DNA from: Hemiscyllium ocellatum
Taxonomy: Eukaryota
DNA: 64,000 bases
Reading direction: 5' to 3'
NCBI RefSeq assembly: GCF_020745735.1
Contig: NW_026867487.1
Span: 3,596,001 to 3,660,000, forward strand
Shown: piece by piece, positions 399 to 37,500 of the stretch
How the letters are laid out: the number at the start of each line of letters is the position of its first letter
Numbering within the stretch: position 1 is the first letter of the stretch
Program-made: the position numbers and the translations under genes
Notes under the pieces: model-generated
Told to the model about the DNA's origin: nothing
The model's input: the letters and a program-made list of their open reading frames with translations, nothing else
The model's database searches: none

Positions 399-640
399 TT
401 ATTTAGTGTGGGAACAGGCCCTCCGATCCAACAAGTCCACACCAACCCATTCCACTACGGGCAAATTATTATGGCCAATTCACCAAACCTGTACATCTTT
501 AGAAGGAAATTGGAGCACACGCACCCACGCACGGGCAGAATGTGCAAACTCCACACAGACAGTCGCCTGAGGCGGGAATTGAACCCAGCTCTTTAATGCT
601 GCGAAACAGCAGTTCGAACCATTGTGCCACCATGCCGCCC
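399..640 (-). mobile_element. tRNA-derived SINE (HE1-like shark SINE), internally deleted
   Basis: Starts GGGCGGCATGGTGGCAC with A box and GGTTCAATTCC B box on minus; similar to the copies at 3449, 19419 and 33971. Confidence 0.85.
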
Positions 641-3759: not shown

Positions 3760-4442
3760 ACTAATTTGTTCCAAATGTATGAACGTTGTTAATGAATAAA
3801 GTTTCTCGGTCTCAATGAATGCTAGTGTCCTCTCGCTATACTTCTCATCTTTTTTTTCACTTTGTTCTCTCTACTCATTTGAAGACATTGGCAGTTTAAA
3901 GTTCATGTGCTCTATTATCAAATTAACGATTAGGTGTTGCAAGCATTTTGTTCTTTGCTCACAATTATTTAGTGTTCTCTGCAAAGTTATATCTGTGAAA
4001 TTCCGAATAAATCTTGAATGATAATTGGATCAGAGCGCGCTCTGTTGAGTTATGACTCCTCCATTTTCTTCATTGTGTAGCTTGATACTTTTCTGGACAC
4101 AGTTTTGCACTTATCTCCATGGCATGTCAGGGGTTCTATTTTATTTGAATTATTCAACAACGTACCTCCTGCTCCATCTAGTGTCTCCTTAAAATAAAGT
4201 CAGGTCGAACATTGAGTTCGTCTTGAATCATGAGACGATTATGAATGGATAGCAACAAGATATATCAACAGCAGCGCACAAAATTCTCTCAAATGTTCGA
4301 CGCCTCTTGCCATATGCCAGATTCTGTTAAGTTGCCGCACAGTTCTTTATCCCAAATTTACGTGATGAAGTATTTTGTTAATGCACACTCGTTTACACTG
4401 TGCGATCTATTTTTGGGCATAATCCATTCATCAAGATTGCTC

Positions 4443-7700: not shown

Positions 7701-7877
7701 GTGAGTGTGACTGTTGCTTATGTTGGAAACATGTATATGATATGATGATATGTTGTGTTTGACAGATTTTGCTGCTGCATGATTTTATATCATCGGATTT
7801 TGAACTCTATTGCATTGTATTAAAATATGTTATACACTACTGTATGTTATTTCTGTTTATCTTTCCATTCTCCTCAG

Positions 7878-8150
7878 CTGTTGCAGGTAGCAACGAGGTG
7901 TCACAGTCATCAGAATTAGTGATCGTTATCGAGGGAAACACTGCAATATTGACCTGTACCACCACAGTAGCAGGGCGGATCCTACAGTGGTACATTCAAT
8001 ACACGGACGGAACCATGAAGCATCTGGTGAGCGGTACCAGCAATCGGGACAGGATTGCTGCTCAGTTCAGTTCAGTGGAGAAGAGAAGCACTCTGAATGT
8101 TCATGACATTCGAGTGACAGACATTGCCACCTATTTCTGCGCAGTAGAGA
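7878..8150 (+). CDS. TRAV: T-cell receptor V gene segment exon (V-alpha/delta locus type), open frame, apparently functional
   Basis: Pyrimidine tract and CAG acceptor at 7875-7877. Translates AVAGSNEVSQSSELVIVIEGNTAILTC...LQWYIQY...TLNVHDIRVTDIATYFCAVE, with both canonical Cys, the Trp and the DxxxYxC motif. Ends directly at an RSS heptamer. Confidence 0.92.
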
Positions 8151-8189
8151 CACAATGAAGCCAAGATCAGTGAGGACCGTACAAAAACC
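8151..8189 (+). other. Recombination signal sequence, 23-bp spacer (CACAATG-23-ACAAAAACC)
   Basis: Heptamer 8151-8157 (6/7 match to CACAGTG), exactly 23-nt spacer 8158-8180, perfect nonamer 8181-8189. Confidence 0.95.
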
Positions 8190-10790: not shown

Positions 10791-10987
10791 TCGGATCTCA
10801 ATATTGTATCTATCTTCAGTGGTTTTCGCTACACTGAAACATAGGATCATGGCTAATGAAGTTTGGAAAATGACAGCGTTTGCAACCTGCACGTCATACA
10901 CATGTAAAACAAAAACATTCGCTTCGTCAAAACTTTAGAAACAAATCATATGGCATGAAAAAAAACTTTTGTTTATTTTTACAATCT

Positions 10988-11040
10988 GAGTTCATGTCCC
11001 AACTGAATTATTCCTCTTGAGACTAGCATCTGGCATAAAA
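10988..11040 (+). promoter_or_regulatory. Conserved proximal promoter block of GPCR gene 1 (AATTA + CCTCTTGAGA + ATAAAA)
   Basis: Aligns by eye with 30743-30790 (minus), upstream of the paralog, at nearly the same distance from the ATG. Confidence 0.6.
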
Positions 11041-11110
11041 CAGGAAAGCATCGACTATTTGACAGTCGCAGGGCCACAGTTATTGAGATTCCTCCAGGTT
11101 CCCCAAGTCG

Positions 11111-11180
11111 ATGCATGGGCCAGCAAAAGGCATCTTTTATGCCATTTGTTATCCAGTTCTCGCTGCTATTGGTGTTCCGG
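11111..11180 (+). CDS. GPR139-like: GPR139-like GPCR gene 1, exon 1 (MHGPAKGIFYAICYPVLAAIGVP)
   Basis: 70-nt coding exon ending at GTAATT donor (11181, phase 1). Homologous to exon 1 of gene 2 and completes TM1. Confidence 0.88.
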
Positions 11181-12763: not shown

Positions 12764-13734
12764 CCAACTTTGTGGCCATCGTAATTCTGTCCCGGGGACA
12801 GTGTGGACTTTCTCGGTGTGTGACTTATTATTTGATGGCAATTGCAGTGAGCGATTTCCTTGTGATTATCACTGGGTGCATTCTCAACCGAATTGCTCGC
12901 ATCTATTTTACCTACAGTGCATTGTCCACAACCACCGGCTGTTCTCTCAGCGCTGTGCTGGTTTACTTTAGCCGAGATGGTTCAGTATGGCTAACAGTGG
13001 CTTTCACCATTGACCGTTTTGTGTCTATCTGCTGCCAAAACCTGAAGACCAGATATTGCATCAAGAAAACAGCGTCGCTGGTAATAGGAATTGTCTGCCT
13101 GCTGAATGCTGTAAAGAACGTGCCTTTTTACTTTGTCTACAAACCTTTGTATATCGTGGATGGTGTGGCCTGGTTTTGTGATATCAAGTCTACGTATTAC
13201 AGCTCACTCGCTTGGCGGGTCTATGATTGGCTGGATCACATTTTAATTCCGTTTCTTCCTTTCTTCCTCATTCTACTGCTCAACATCCTGACAATTCGAC
13301 ACATCTTGGCAGGCAACCAAGTCCGCACAGACAATGAAAGAGACCCGGAGTTGGCCAGCCGCAAGAGGTCCATCACCCTGCTGTTCACCATCTCTCTCAG
13401 CTTCCTCATCCTATGGATCATACAAGTCATACATTTCCTCTATGTGCGTATTCCTGGAAAAGCGTACTTCGCTGGCTTGGATTTCAATGACCCTGATTAC
13501 ATCCTTCAAGAGGCGACTAACTTACTTCAGATAATCAGTTCCTGCAATAATGTCTTCATCTACACAATAGTCCAAAGGAAGTTTCGAAGGGAGTTGAAGA
13601 AGCTACTGATTTATCCGATTGACACTGTCACCAGTTTCGAGAAGTATCTCTCAAATCACTCGAAACGCCTTTTTGACATATTTCAGGCTGCCATCCCCAC
13701 CCATGCTATTTTGAACGTACTATATAGAAACTGA
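12764..13734 (+). CDS. GPR139-like: GPR139-like class A GPCR gene 1, exon 2; join(11111..11180,12764..13734) = 346 aa
   Basis: Acceptor ...ctctcatAG at 12762-12763. Open frame with seven hydrophobic segments, ANFVAIVIL (TM1), LMAIAVSD (TM2), SVWLTVAFTIDRF (TM3; cf. GPR139 SIWITVPLTIDRY) and ECL2 WFC. Joined length is 1041 nt = 347 codons including the stop. Confidence 0.93.
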
Positions 13735-28364: not shown

Positions 28365-29266
28365 TTATGTATTAAAGAAACGACTTGCAATGGTGAAGGG
28401 ACACATTAGCGCATTCTTCATCTGCTCTCTGAACTTGGACTGAGACACAGCGTAAATGAAAACGTTGTTACAAGAACTTAGTAATTGGAGCACTTTCGTA
28501 GTCTCTTGAAGGATGTATTGAGGGTCATTAAAATTCAAACTGTTGAAATAGGCATCACCTTTAATTCGCACATATAGAAAATAAATGACATACGTGATCC
28601 AAAGAAGAAGAAAGCTGAGAGAGATGGCGAAAAGCAGGACAATGGACTTCTTTCGGTTGGCTATTTCTTGGTCTTCACCCTGCTGAGTTCGTTGGAGTCT
28701 CTTGCGGGCTTGGCTGGCTGCAAGGATGTGTCTTACCGTCAAGGCGTTGAGTAGTAGAATGAGTACAAAGGGTGAAAAAGGAGTTAATATCCGGTCCAAC
28801 CAATCGTAGGCCTGCCAGGCGGGCGAGGAATAGTAGATAGATTTAATGTCACAGAACCAGGGAACCTCGTCCAGAACGTATAAAGGCTGGTATATGAAGT
28901 AATAAGGAATATTCTTTATGAGGCTTAGTGCACAGATAATTCCCATGACTTGCAAAGCGGTTTTGTCAGTGCAGTATCTTGTTTTCAGGCTGTGGGAGCA
29001 GATGGCCACAAAACGGTCGATGGTAAAAGCCACTGTCAACCAAACGGAGCCATCCCGTGTGACATAGACGAGCACGGCACTCAGGCTGCACGCCGGGGTT
29101 GTAGACAGTACACTGTACCTGAAGTAGATTCTGGGGATCCGGTTGAGTAAGCAACCTGTGGCGATGACAAGGAAATCAGCCACCGCTATGGCCACCAAAT
29201 AGAAAGTGATACACCGGGAGAGTCCACACCGCCCTCGGGATAGAATTATGATTGCTATGAGGTTGG
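28365..29266 (-). CDS. GPR139-like: GPR139-like class A GPCR gene 2, exon 2; complement(join(28365..29266,30601..30670)) = 323 aa
   Basis: Acceptor ...ctctcacAG at 29268-29267. Open frame ANLIAIIILSRGRCGLSRC...SVWLTVAFTIDRF...SSCNNVFIY...FFNT*. Collinear with gene 1 apart from a 5-aa ICL3 indel and the C-tail. Confidence 0.93.
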
Positions 29267-30600: not shown

Positions 30601-30670
30601 CTGGCATACCAATGACAGCGAGAAGTATGTAGTATATAGCATAGAGAGAACCATTTGCTGGACCATGCAT
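30601..30670 (-). CDS. GPR139-like: GPR139-like GPCR gene 2, exon 1 (MHGPANGSLYAIYYILLAVIGMP)
   Basis: ATG at 30670, 70 nt long, GTAGGT donor at 30600 (phase 1). Same length and phase as gene 1 exon 1. Confidence 0.88.
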
Positions 30671-30742
30671 CGTCTTTTTGGAAAATAATGGCGTTATCCA
30701 AGTTGTGCCGCTTGTTTCTGAGACACTTTCTGAAGATCTCTC

Positions 30743-30790
30743 ATTTATTCTGCATGAGTATCTCCAGAGGGGTTAATTATGACAGAACTC
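30743..30790 (-). promoter_or_regulatory. Conserved proximal promoter block of GPCR gene 2 (TAATTA + CCTCTGGAGA + ATAAA)
   Basis: Reverse complement gagttctgtcataattaacccctctggagatactcatgcagaataaat aligns with 10988-11040. Confidence 0.6.
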
Positions 30791-31047
30791 TTTACATCCA
30801 TTCAACAAACAAACAAATTAGCTTACAGTTTCATGCCTTTAATGTCTAACATTGCAAAGGGATACACAGCAGTTCTTTTTTTTGTTTGTGGCTGAAGAAC
30901 TGATAATACATTCAGCAGCCACATTTACGTCCGCTGTCGACAATGATTTGAGGTCGATCTCAAGTAAAAAAAAATCATGTTTTCTCATCTCTGACCAGTT
31001 CAAAATTATTTTGTATCTTTTAGCTATCATATTAGTTATATTGTTCT

Positions 31048-31203
31048 NNNNNNNNNNNNNNNNNNNNNNNNNNNNNNNNNNNNNNNNNNNNNNNNNNNNN
31101 NNNNNNNNNNNNNNNNNNNNNNNNNNNNNNNNNNNNNNNNNNNNNNNNNNNNNNNNNNNNNNNNNNNNNNNNNNNNNNNNNNNNNNNNNNNNNNNNNNNN
31201 NNN
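31048..31203. other. Assembly gap (156 N)
   Basis: Run of N. Confidence 0.99.
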
Positions 31204-33779: not shown

Positions 33780-34520
33780 TGACGTTCCCACATATGATGC
33801 CAATATCTATAACAAAGACCTAAGTGTTTGACCAAAGAACACACCTGTCGACTCAACAGACTAATCAACAACTTAAATCCAGATTTTCATATTGTCCTAA
33901 TCACTCTCATCCCGTGCATAGAAGACGACAACTGCTTTCTCTAGATACACAAAGCCTACACACCTGGACATTTAGATTAGATTACTTACAGTGTGGAAAC
34001 AGTCTCTTAGGCCCAACAAGTCCACAGCGACCCACCGAAGCTCAGCCCACCCAGACCCACTCCCCCACATTTACCCGGCCCCGAACACTATGGGCAATTT
34101 AGCATGGCCAATTCACCTAACTTGCACATTTTTGGACTGTGGGAGGAAACCGGAGCACCCGGAGGAAACCCATGCAGAGACGGGGAGAACGTGCAAACTC
34201 CAGACAGTCAGTCGCCTGAGGCGGAAATTGAACCCGGGTCTCTGGCGCTGTGAGGCAGCAGTGCTAAACACTGTGCCACCGTGCCGCCCACGACATGTTA
34301 TCGTATCAGCCCAAAGACCTGCGTGAGAGCTTCTCTGGCTATATCGAGACCATCTTTTAACACATTCCAAGAGGAACCCCCACTTTCCATCGAGACACTA
34401 CAGACCTATTGCAGAAACTCAGCCCCCACGGAGCAGTCGAAGCTGGAATATTCCTCATCATAATGAACGCTTCGGCACTCTACACCAGTTCCCACTGCCA
34501 ACCACTCCCTTCACCAGGAC
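33780..34520 (+). mobile_element. Penelope RT fragment split by a SINE
   Basis: IHKAYTPG (to 33968), then after the SINE VIVS...ESFSGYIE...RDTTDLLQKL...IFLIIMNASALYTS, matching PLE RT KIHK..PGRPIVS...DTTDFL...MDVSALYT. Confidence 0.7.
33971..34289 (-). mobile_element. Full-length HE1-like SINE
   Basis: Near-identical to 3449-3759; ttagattagatt tail. Confidence 0.92.
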
Positions 34521-37500
34521 GACAACACTTTATGTGAAAATAAACCAGTCAGTGTGTTATGCTGTCTTTTATCTTTGATGCTGTGCATATAACATTAGCA
34601 TGCACTGCGAGATAGTATGACTAAATTCTGTTTCGGTTCAGATTAACCAACAACATTGATTTATGCTACTGTTTGACTTGCACAGTTATTGCAAGACTGC
34701 ACTGTGTTACATAAACCCCTTGTAAAAACTTTTTTCAACGGTAATTTCGAACTACATTAATTAATCATGTCATTTTTCTGTACTACACTGTTTCTATCAC
34801 ATTTGTCATTTCACTAGTTCACTGATATTGCAGCCTGATCACATTAAACGCTCCATTCATTCCAGAAGGCGATATGCTTGTCCTTTTGTTTCACGAAACC
34901 ATGTGCAAATTGTTTCAGACTGAGACCCTAATTCGTTTTAAATGACATTATACATGACACTGTCATATCAGCTGTTATACTAAGCATTTACTTTAGCAAT
35001 TTGCAATTTGGATTTCACCACTGCCAGTCACCTTGATGCTAATTTTCCAAGGCATGTTTCTGTCGTTACTTCACTCCACCCTATTATCAAAAGCATGATT
35101 TCAAATGTTTAAGATTGAAACATTTTAAGATTTAGGTCATATTGAATTATTGAACTCAAAATCAGCGAGTCATGAGGATAATGCATGAGCTGATCTGTCA
35201 GCTGAAAGAAGGAAGTATTTTGGAAGGTTGAAGAGATGAGAGATACAGATTGAAGGTTGAGATGAGACTTCAACTCAAATCTCCCATTAACGCTTACAGT
35301 GATGAAAATTTAAAAGTATAGTTTCTGACATGGGGAGAGGCAAACAATTTGTATCTATCCATTCTCACAAAAATACAATCGTAATGCCAATGATTTAATG
35401 GGAAATAAATTAGTCTCTTTGTTCACTGAGTTGTAAGGTGCAGGTTTCAAATTAATTTCTGCTCTGGAGACTCTCGCTTTAAATAAACGGTGGATGATTT
35501 CAACGTGTCACAATGTAACGGCCTAAAACTTCAGGAATATTTTTTTTCAAAAAGGATACACGCGACCGCGAACGGACCGGTCTTTGCAATTTGTTATCCC
35601 ATTCTCGTCGTGATTGGTGCCCCTGGTAAGAAACAAATGCTGTACAGTGTATGAAGTTGCTAAATTCCAGGGGTTTGATCTCTTTCATTTCCTGATCACG
35701 ATTTTTTAAAGAATCAGTATGATTGTACATAAATAAATACAGTTAGAATAGTGCAGCAAATTAATGTGATACTCAATGCAATATCATGCTATGATCAATT
35801 TCGCACATTCATTGGAATTACTTCAGTGGGAGCAAAAGACGTTGCTCCATTTATAATGCCACACATTTATTGGATTATCGTTTATTAGATAGGTGAAGTA
35901 TGTCACTTCTCTAAAAATGATAGCGATCTGGGCACCAGAAAAAAAACATAAAAGGACTTCACTAAAACAGTAAAAATAATATTAAGAATAGACTCTAAAT
36001 TCAGGAAGTGAGCCAGTCTGTAATTTCATACTTGACTGATGGTAAAGGAATTTTTAAACAAGTCTTTCATGAGGGAGCTTGGCGTTCGCATTAAAATCAA
36101 CAATGTTATTTGTTTAGTGAAATGGTAGGGTGATTCCATTGAGGGAGATAATCATTTCAATAGGCAGTTTGAACGTAATGGACAGAATGTCCATCTTAAT
36201 AGATGCAGCTATAATGCGATTAAATGCATGTCAGCGCAGGAACATTAATTTACTTTACTGGTCAGCACTCAGTGTCGTTATAATATACTTAATTGTCATC
36301 CAATGTGTTTCACACAACTGTGTTCCACTGAGCAAAAAGCAGTATTTTCATTTCGTAATGATGTTGAAGGACAAAATAATGCACAATGTCATCCTTATGA
36401 TAATTGCGCTTTAGTATGAAATGCACATAGCAATTTCGCATAGTTACAATGTGATCTCTGGAAGGATGTATCCGTTCCAATCTTGTGAATTCTCACTGGG
36501 CAGTCTCCTTTGTTAATATGATATTGAGAATTAAATATGGAAATATTCGAAGGAGGTACATTGAGAGAAAAGTGTTTTTTTTTCCAGTTGTTGTCTATTT
36601 CATCCTGTGCAGTTACGATTTGATCTTGATTTGTTCTTATGGAAAGTATTGGTTGGAATTTCAGTATATTGTGATTGCCTCTGACAAGGTCAATAGTTCT
36701 TGGTATTGCTTAGCTTCTATTTGTGCAATTCGAATTCCTCTCTTTAATCAGCTACTGCAAAGAGTTTACCAGACATGTTTCACAAAATGTTTATTTTTAG
36801 ATCAAGACTAAAAGGCAAAATCGATTAATGGATATAGCAGCTTCATAAAGTCAGGAGAGAGAGAAAGCAAAGTGAACTGCTTCGCAAACTACCTGAAAGC
36901 AGGTCAGCAACATTATAAAGGACCGAGTAGAGGAGAGTGACTACGGGAGAGAAAAAATGTCAGCGTCAGAAAGTCATTCCAATTTGTAAATTCCTGAAAG
37001 AGCCACAATGTGACATCACACGCAAGTTGTTAGGTGATTGCTCGACATTTCTTCGTTACCTTTCGATTGACTAACTGGTTTAATTCAGGAGACATTAACT
37101 TATCTGAAGAATACAATCAGGACATTCACCATTCAATTATTTAAAATCAAATTTAATGAAATGGAAAGATCCCTGAGCAAGTCATGTTCTGCTGCGACAC
37201 CATATGAGAGTTGTTGGACACCAATACAGCAAATGTTAGCTGACTGAAAATTTTCGGATCGGATTTGATTAGTTGGAGTCTGAGCTGTACACACTGAACT
37301 ACTTTACGGAGGAGATACTTTAACGATGTTTCGCAATCAATCACGCTCAGACAAGGGAGGGTGTGACAGCGAATGAAGCAGCCGCTAAGTTGCATAATTC
37401 AGCTTTACAGTAGCATCATATAAAGAGGTGTAAAAATTGGAAACAAAAGTGAATAATTTGCGATGAGAATGATGCTCTGACAAGCAATTGAAATGTCTTG

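Follow-up and report, generated by a model that had tools for sequence, protein, structure and literature searches.

The question raised by this locus is whether a short block of sequence shared upstream of two G protein-coupled receptor (GPCR) genes is a promoter, and whether it is a promoter of the type described for olfactory receptor (OR) genes. The genes, referred to as gene 1 and gene 2, are located in a stretch of 64,000 nucleotides from Hemiscyllium ocellatum, which was analysed as a whole and is called the window here. Cartilaginous fish possess very few classical odorant receptors, and the original prediction had described the two genes as members of a GPR139-like group with an OR-style promoter, composed of a homeodomain core, an O/E-like site and a TATA-like element. 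Both genes are intact and consist of two exons, with a 70-nt first exon that ends at a GT donor and the same phase-1 intron, and they are oriented tail to tail. The spliced products of gene 1 and gene 2 are free of stops and comprise 346 and 323 amino acids, respectively, both match the Pfam family 7tm_1 (E 2e-18 and 3e-21), and the proteins encoded by exon 2 share 67% identity. The C-terminal tail of gene 1 (13639-13734, + strand) runs about 23 residues beyond the end of the 92%-identical Chiloscyllium plagiosum orthologue and of most relatives (346 versus 323 aa), apparently through loss or displacement of the usual stop.

A protein search returned 312 matches below E 1e-20, and the best 120 of these all come from sharks, skates or rays or carry no species name. 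The top matches within the best 120 of the 312 are from Chiloscyllium plagiosum (92%, 'probable GPR139') and Rhincodon typus (82%), dozens of members are present per species, and nearly all of them were automatically labelled 'probable GPR139'. GPR139 and GPR142 are mammalian receptors for aromatic amino acids. The shark genes share the class-A 7TM fold with these receptors, and their relatives bear the automatic name; however, they belong to a lineage-expanded family, and the dozens of paralogues per species (best 120 of 312 matches) argue against a simple one-to-one orthology with vertebrate GPR139. No description of this receptor family or of its promoter was found in the literature. An open reading frame resembling a TCR V-alpha/delta segment (7769-8158, + strand), which reads …LTCTTT…WYIQ…ATYFCAVETQ, lies about 3 kb upstream of gene 1, and the GPCR genes thus sit inside a V-gene array. 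V-set genes also flank a whale-shark paralogue. No functional link between the GPCR genes and the V segments was found.

Re-reading of the sequence confirmed the motif coordinates that had been proposed for gene 1 and gene 2, and the 10-mers containing the putative O/E-like sites end 89 nt (gene 1) and 91 nt (gene 2) before the ATG, as had been claimed. The flanks of the two genes had been called otherwise hard to align; this does not hold for gene 2, in which homology to the family extends from -167 to -63. The fit of both 10-mers to YYYCARRRR, which had been taken as a sign of an O/E site, carries no information, as 108 matches to this pattern are present in the window and 107.7 are expected. 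The sequence CCTCTNGAGA is found twice in the 64 kb, both times at the two promoters, with 0.30 occurrences expected. Taken alone, the two upstream regions do not reach significance: agreement at 9 of 10 positions with an offset of at most 3 was obtained in 204 of 2000 dinucleotide shuffles in an ATG-anchored comparison.

Further copies of the gene family were compared for this reason in related species. The loci fetched were the syntenic whale-shark locus and nine others, namely five more from the whale shark, two from the zebra shark, one from the thorny skate and one from the little skate; exon 1 was located in each of them by tblastn and by pattern, and the upstream sequences were aligned on the ATG. 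In this ATG-anchored alignment, nearly all copies showed the block. In the syntenic whale-shark locus, the two orthologues converge as they do in the window, and the gene-2 copy is frameshifted. This gene-2 counterpart (L001 19671-21273, - strand, NC_063373.1) is broken into three frames, and the donor of its exon 1 is GTGTAG-like. It has lost the TATA block through an 11-nt deletion and also lacks the TAAT core; in this copy, promoter and gene appear to be decaying together. Two whale-shark RefSeq models (L001 10828 and L010 9593) omit the true 70-nt first exon, one of them beginning in unrelated upstream sequence (386 aa) and the other being a single-exon model (350 aa). The true start of both is recovered by the promoter profile in combination with the MHGPxxG exon pattern. 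In the thorny skate (L004), three copies of exon 1 (3808 -, 4852 -, 10001 +) lie inside 7 kb together with only two exon-2 bodies, and the promoter block precedes two of the exon-1 copies, but not the one at 3808.

A profile HMM was built from positions -170 to -55 of 11 promoters from whale shark, zebra shark, thorny skate and little skate, and the training set excluded the window sequence as well as the orthologues of the window genes. Within the window, this held-out HMM matches only three sites, which are a third copy, gene 2 and gene 1 (Table 1). In the fetched loci, it matches a further 13 copies of exon 1. All 16 significant matches in the roughly 300 kb searched are located 50-70 nt upstream of the start of an exon 1; all promoters used for training and testing are homologous to each other, and these counts do not represent independent events. 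The best unrelated match in the window and the loci (about 300 kb) has an E value of 1.6, and the HMM misses two exon-1 copies, that of the whale-shark gene 2 with its frameshift and one of the three in the thorny skate. Control HMMs of equal size were derived from the same 11 genes, covering -300 to -185, -420 to -305, the introns at +80 to +195 and +200 to +315, and the 5'UTR. None of them gave a significant match in the window; the nearest were found in the gene 1 intron (E 0.009), in the gene 2 5'UTR (E 0.14) and upstream of the third copy (E 0.5), and the flanks score 5-12 orders of magnitude below the block. The block is therefore kept far better than its non-coding surroundings, which speaks in favour of selection and against mere leftover similarity. 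Between the window and the whale-shark orthologues, the block is 73% and 62% identical and the introns are 66-73% identical, a comparison without power; constraint is seen between paralogues only and not between orthologues. A loose search of the window for the composite pattern brought up no extra enhancer-like copies. A loose pattern search returned two near-identical 18-mers, AATTCCCGCCTCAGGCGA and AATTTCCGCCTCAGGCGA, at 563-580 (-) and 34212-34229 (-), which probably belong to a dispersed repeat.

Table 1. Positions in the window of the two receptor genes, the third copy and the elements of their putative promoters.
Feature	Position	Strand	Remarks
Gene 1, upstream T/G-rich block CTTTTGTTTATTTT	10966..10979	+	weak copy of family TTTGTTTGTTCA; forkhead-like TGTTT core
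Gene 1, putative family promoter block	10990..11054	+	nhmmer E 4.8e-6, 24.5 bits, HMM positions 50-114
Gene 1, homeodomain-type core AATTA	11006..11010	+	GAATTA compared with family TAATTG
Gene 1, dyad CCTC-TT-GAGA, 10-mer CCTCTTGAGA	11013..11022	+	2 nt past homeodomain-type core
Gene 1, putative TATA block GCATAAAACAGGAAA	11033..11047	+	homologous to family GAATAAATGAGGGA and skate TATAAG
Gene 1, predicted transcription start	11064	+	A of conserved CA, 29 nt past start of TATA block
Gene 1, exon 1 (MHGPAKGIFYAICYPVLAAIGVP + 1 nt)	11111..11180	+	ATG 11111; donor GT at 11181
Gene 1, exon 2 (remaining 7TM receptor including stop)	12764..13734	+	
Gene 2, putative family promoter block	30734..30837	-	nhmmer E 9.9e-10, 36.4 bits, HMM positions 2-109
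Gene 2, homeodomain-type site TAATTA	30774..30779	-	
Gene 2, dyad CCTC-TG-GAGA, 10-mer CCTCTGGAGA	30761..30770	-	3-nt spacer from TAATTA
Gene 2, TATA-like ATAAAT within GAATAAATGAGAGA	30743..30748	-	ATAAA = 30748-30744
Gene 2, predicted transcription start	30719	-	conserved CA 29 nt past TATA start
Gene 2, exon 1 (MHGPANGSLYAIYYILLAVIGMP + 1 nt)	30601..30670	-	ATG 30670
Gene 2, exon 2	28365..29266	-	
Third putative family promoter copy	35406..35504	+	nhmmer E 2.9e-13, 47.8 bits; best match of the window
Pseudo-exon 1 behind third copy (IHATANGPVFAICYPILVVIGAP)	35556..35625	+	start codon is ATA, otherwise in frame; donor GT 35626

The module is located about 60-170 nt before the start codon, and approximately 110 nt of it can be aligned across the family; its conservation, anatomy and spacing are read directly from this alignment. 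In 5' to 3' direction, it consists of a T/G block rich in TGTTTGTT, the motif TAATT(G/A), 2 nt, the dyad CCTC-NN-GAGA, about 12 nt and GAATAAATGA, which is replaced by TATAAG in skates; a conserved CA follows the TATA element after 29 nt, and another 48 nt or so lead to the ATG. The consensus of the 5' part reads GCATGAAAC, about 10 nt, TTTGTTTGTTCA..GAACTGTAA, about 6 nt, GCATG, about 7 nt, CTTAATTG and 2 nt, and the 3' part continues with CCTC-YK-GAGA-CT, about 10 nt, GAATAAATGAGGGA, about 20 nt, CAGA, about 47 nt and the ATG. The composite of homeodomain-type site and dyad can also be written TAATTG-NN-CCTCTGGAGAC. Positions -8 to -3 from the dyad, which hold TAATT, carry the consensus base in 10-12 of 15 independent copies, and the base following TAATT is G in seven and A in five of them. 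Both halves of the dyad, CCTC and GAGA, are preserved in 12-14 of the 15 copies, and the central two bases are variable (T in 10, G in 9). Invariant half-sites around a free 2-nt centre have the look of a palindrome for a dimer, and the conserved register is thus that of the 10-mer chosen in the original prediction. The homeodomain-type site and the dyad are separated by 2 nt in nearly all shark copies and by 3 nt in gene 2, and the dyad starts at -95 to -103 in 13 of 14 shark copies. The shark TATA block GAATAAAT aligns with TATAAG in Amblyraja (TATTAA in the second Amblyraja copy); in Leucoraja, TAATTT is followed by 2 nt, TCAC-CT-GGGA and a TATAAG just past the dyad. ATAAA(T/A) in sharks and TATAAG or TATTAA in skates, each 29 nt before the conserved CA, form a layout of TATA and initiator, and the A/T block would accordingly be read as a TATA box, with transcription predicted to start near the positions given in Table 1.

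The three copies in the window differ in their state of preservation. That of gene 1 is the weakest of all, at 24.5 bits, and is among the most degenerate of the family, and the coding sequence behind it is intact. Its block reaches an E value of 1e-6 when the window alone is used as the search target. The T/G block of gene 1 corresponds to HMM columns 21-31 (-143 to -133) and falls outside the local nhmmer match, the TAAT core can be read on the opposite strand only (TAATTC), and ATAAAA is found at 11035-11040 (+). Its dyad has no mismatch to the family dyad CCTCNNGAGA and three mismatches to the EBF consensus TCCCNNGGGA. The gene 2 block is near full length and contains GGCATGAAAC and TTTGTTTGTTTGTTG (30816-30802); in a register 2 nt upstream of its dyad, CCCCTCTGGA has two mismatches to the EBF consensus. 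The sequence upstream of gene 2 is readable for 377 nt and then runs into an assembly gap (31048-31203). The third copy comprises CTCTTTGTTCA, TAATTT at 35453-35458, the dyad GCTC-TG-GAGA at 35461-35470 and ATAAA at 35483-35487. No exon 2 belonging to this copy was found within the 64-kb window, and the fact that the best-scoring promoter of the window belongs to a dead gene copy counts against the view that the block is a promoter under selection.

We nevertheless consider it probable, at roughly 0.78, that a large GPCR family of cartilaginous fish has its proximal promoter in this block, which is copied together with exon 1 and serves one cell type with one set of factors. The block would have been duplicated along with exon 1 at each gene duplication and retained by selection. 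Its core would be formed by the TATA box and a CA start 29 nt further on, about 48 nt before the ATG, and three elements of activator type would be held at fixed positions upstream, namely the TGTTTGTT block, TAATT(G/A) and the dyad exactly 2 nt later. A homeodomain protein and a dimeric factor may be bound side by side at TAATT(G/A) and the dyad. Since the same module is found in nearly every copy, transcription of all family members most likely takes place in a single cell type. Promoter function, start site, factor class and the common cell type are what we infer from the sequence.

It is very improbable that the block is non-functional and merely represents similarity that has persisted since duplication or gene conversion in a genome that evolves slowly. 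Neutral rates in sharks are slow and some residual homology is therefore to be expected, and the weak near-matches of the control HMMs do lie in the right places outside the block; yet the flanks of the very same genes are those that fall so many orders of magnitude behind it. The block can be recognized between sharks and skates, although the proteins are only 50-57% identical, and its conservation is patterned, with invariant half-sites, a free centre, a fixed spacing and TATA variants that are still TATA boxes. On the other hand, the identity of the block between orthologues equals that of the introns, and the best-preserved block of the window precedes the dead exon 1. Improbable as well is a transcribed block, in which case the true promoter would be located further upstream and the elements would belong to a 5'UTR, an intron or an alternative promoter. 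Non-coding 5' exons are present in many chemoreceptor genes, for instance in mouse V1Rs (PMC3247230), and the position of the start site is a prediction from sequence here. However, core promoters are recognized by just such an arrangement, in which a TATA element precedes a conserved CA by 29 nt and the distance to the ATG is fixed; conservation further upstream is undetectable with the control HMMs, and no conserved splice acceptor was seen by eye in the alignment between the block and the ATG. If the block is the proximal promoter of the family, the cell type remains to be considered. In the olfactory interpretation, an Lhx2/Emx2-type homeodomain protein would bind TAATTG, an Olf/EBF (COE) dimer would bind the dyad, and the family would consist of olfactory chemoreceptors; this is plausible, but less likely than not. 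OR promoters are AT-rich, carry O/E and homeodomain sites near the TSS and in some cases a TATA box (PMC12547500, PMC3247230, PMC5318403), and the layout of the shark module matches these descriptions (PMC12547500, PMC3247230). In mouse OR enhancers, juxtaposed Lhx2 and Ebf sites with rigid spacing are bound cooperatively (Monahan et al. 2017, PMC5608512). The gel-shift probe for Sfaktiria, TAATTGA-TCTCCAAGGA (supplement of PMC5608512), contains a TCTC half-site resembling the CCTC of the sharks, but the shark spacing is 1 nt off this sole mouse composite compared, and the Lhx2/Ebf composite is enriched in intergenic enhancers and depleted from promoters in the mouse, and thus marks enhancers rather than promoters (PMC5608512). 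TAATTG is moreover a target of many homeodomain classes. The dyad shows the geometry of an EBF site, with 4-nt half-sites and a free 2-nt spacer, and the motif CNTCTGG, which a study of mouse V1R and OR genes reports close to their TSS (PMC3247230), is compatible with the shark CCTCTGG. Measured against the EBF consensus TCCCNNGGGA (PMC4312928), 8 of 18 promoters contain a site with at most two mismatches, compared with 11% of background windows (any register, 55-nt region), and two of the 18 contain one with at most one mismatch (background 0.9%); whale-shark Rty_g2 and Rty_L6 and also Leucoraja TCACCTGGGA are one mismatch away from EBF. A perfect EBF site is present in none of the 18 promoters, however, and in the conserved register the dyad deviates from EBF at three of eight positions. 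These deviations are symmetric (CTC/GAG for CCC/GGG) and therefore look like the preference of another factor rather than random decay of an EBF site. When the register is shifted 2 nt upstream, (T/C)CCC-TC-TGGA is found in about half of the copies, with one or two EBF mismatches; this register misfits the pattern of conservation. Of the OR-style promoter originally proposed, the conserved module with its homeodomain-type TAATT(G/A), dyad and TATA element is supported; the dyad, which is 3/8 off the EBF consensus in the conserved register, stays a candidate O/E site, and Y3CAR4 is uninformative.

The size of the family and the small number of ORs in cartilaginous fish also fit the olfactory interpretation. 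Ten clusters of family proteins contained no transcript-derived member, all of them being genome-annotation models. The text of a multi-organ study in the catshark (PMC11979771) does not mention the family, and no GPCR is found among the 50 most specific genes of the brain and olfactory library in the catshark atlas (PMC11979771), which would be expected if the receptors are confined to few cells. The architecture of the module is OR-like, and olfactory expression is plausible but unproven. The farther-reaching proposal, according to which the family is the main odorant-receptor repertoire of sharks and rays, with a rigid homeodomain/COE-type composite in each promoter, similar to the one by which OR enhancers of mammals would select a single receptor per neuron, and a choice logic that predates and is independent of the OR family, appears unlikely. 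The same module might instead act in another cell type, such as another sensory or chemosensory epithelium (taste, solitary chemosensory cells, ampullary organs), CNS neurons or lymphoid cells, which is a real possibility, though one that falls short of an even chance. It would agree with a dyad that is not a canonical EBF site, and factors of the COE and LIM-homeodomain classes are combined in other neurons as well, and B cells use EBF1 (PMC4312928). The CNS neurons in question would be of the kind that expresses true GPR139, and lymphoid cells are brought into play by the V-like segment near gene 1 and the V-set genes beside the whale-shark paralogue; however, no link between the GPCR promoter and V-gene promoters was found, and no immune-type motif was recognized in the block. 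To our knowledge, large, fast-evolving families of vertebrate class-A GPCRs are almost always chemosensory, which also speaks against this alternative. Other factors were compared with the dyad by eye and were set aside: a match to CTCF needs a gap, the central CGCG of the TCTCGCGAGA element of CpG-island promoters is missing, the GG required by AP-2 (GCCN3GGC) falls on a variable position, the CA of the RP58 site CATCTGG is absent and TCTGG is not found in all paralogues, and the half-sites are wrong for HSF and STAT. A STAT-like TTCNNNGAA in the upstream block is present in some copies only.

A promoter shared by the whole family would predict expression in a single, common cell type under the control of a few factors, and the module of about 110 nt represents a ready reporter element and gel-shift probe. 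It can also be used as an annotation signature for family members and for their 70-nt first exons, which are often missed. Despite the scarcity of classical odorant receptors in cartilaginous fish, a large receptor family has remained unstudied in these animals, and if the cell type should be the olfactory neuron, the module would bear on the sense of smell of sharks and on the origin of the logic of receptor choice.

Three known systems of the mouse come closest to the shark module. Like the proximal promoters of mouse OR genes, it is AT-rich and has a TATA element, and no more than about 70 nt separate the predicted start from a TAAT site and a palindromic element of the O/E type. However, mouse OR families cannot be aligned in their promoters and share motif content only, whereas about 110 nt can be aligned family-wide at a fixed distance from the ATG in the shark family, and the shark dyad is CCTC-NN-GAGA and not TCCC-NN-GGGA. 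With the Greek Island Lhx2/Ebf composite of mouse OR enhancers, it has in common that a homeodomain site adjoins a weak EBF-type dyad at rigid spacing, and both the Sfaktiria probe and the shark TAATTG-NN-CCTC-NN-GAGA contain TAATTG and a TCTC-type half-site; the mouse composites are located in intergenic enhancers and the shark copies in putative promoters, with a spacing 1 nt off that of the one mouse sequence. The subfamilies of mouse V1R genes likewise represent a receptor multigene family in which an alignable promoter is copied with the gene and motifs are concentrated near the TSS (PMC3247230). V1R genes differ in that they usually possess a 5' non-coding exon, and their promoters are homologous within a subfamily or cluster only (PMC3247230), whereas the shark block spans paralogues with 50-65% protein identity and is shared by sharks and skates.
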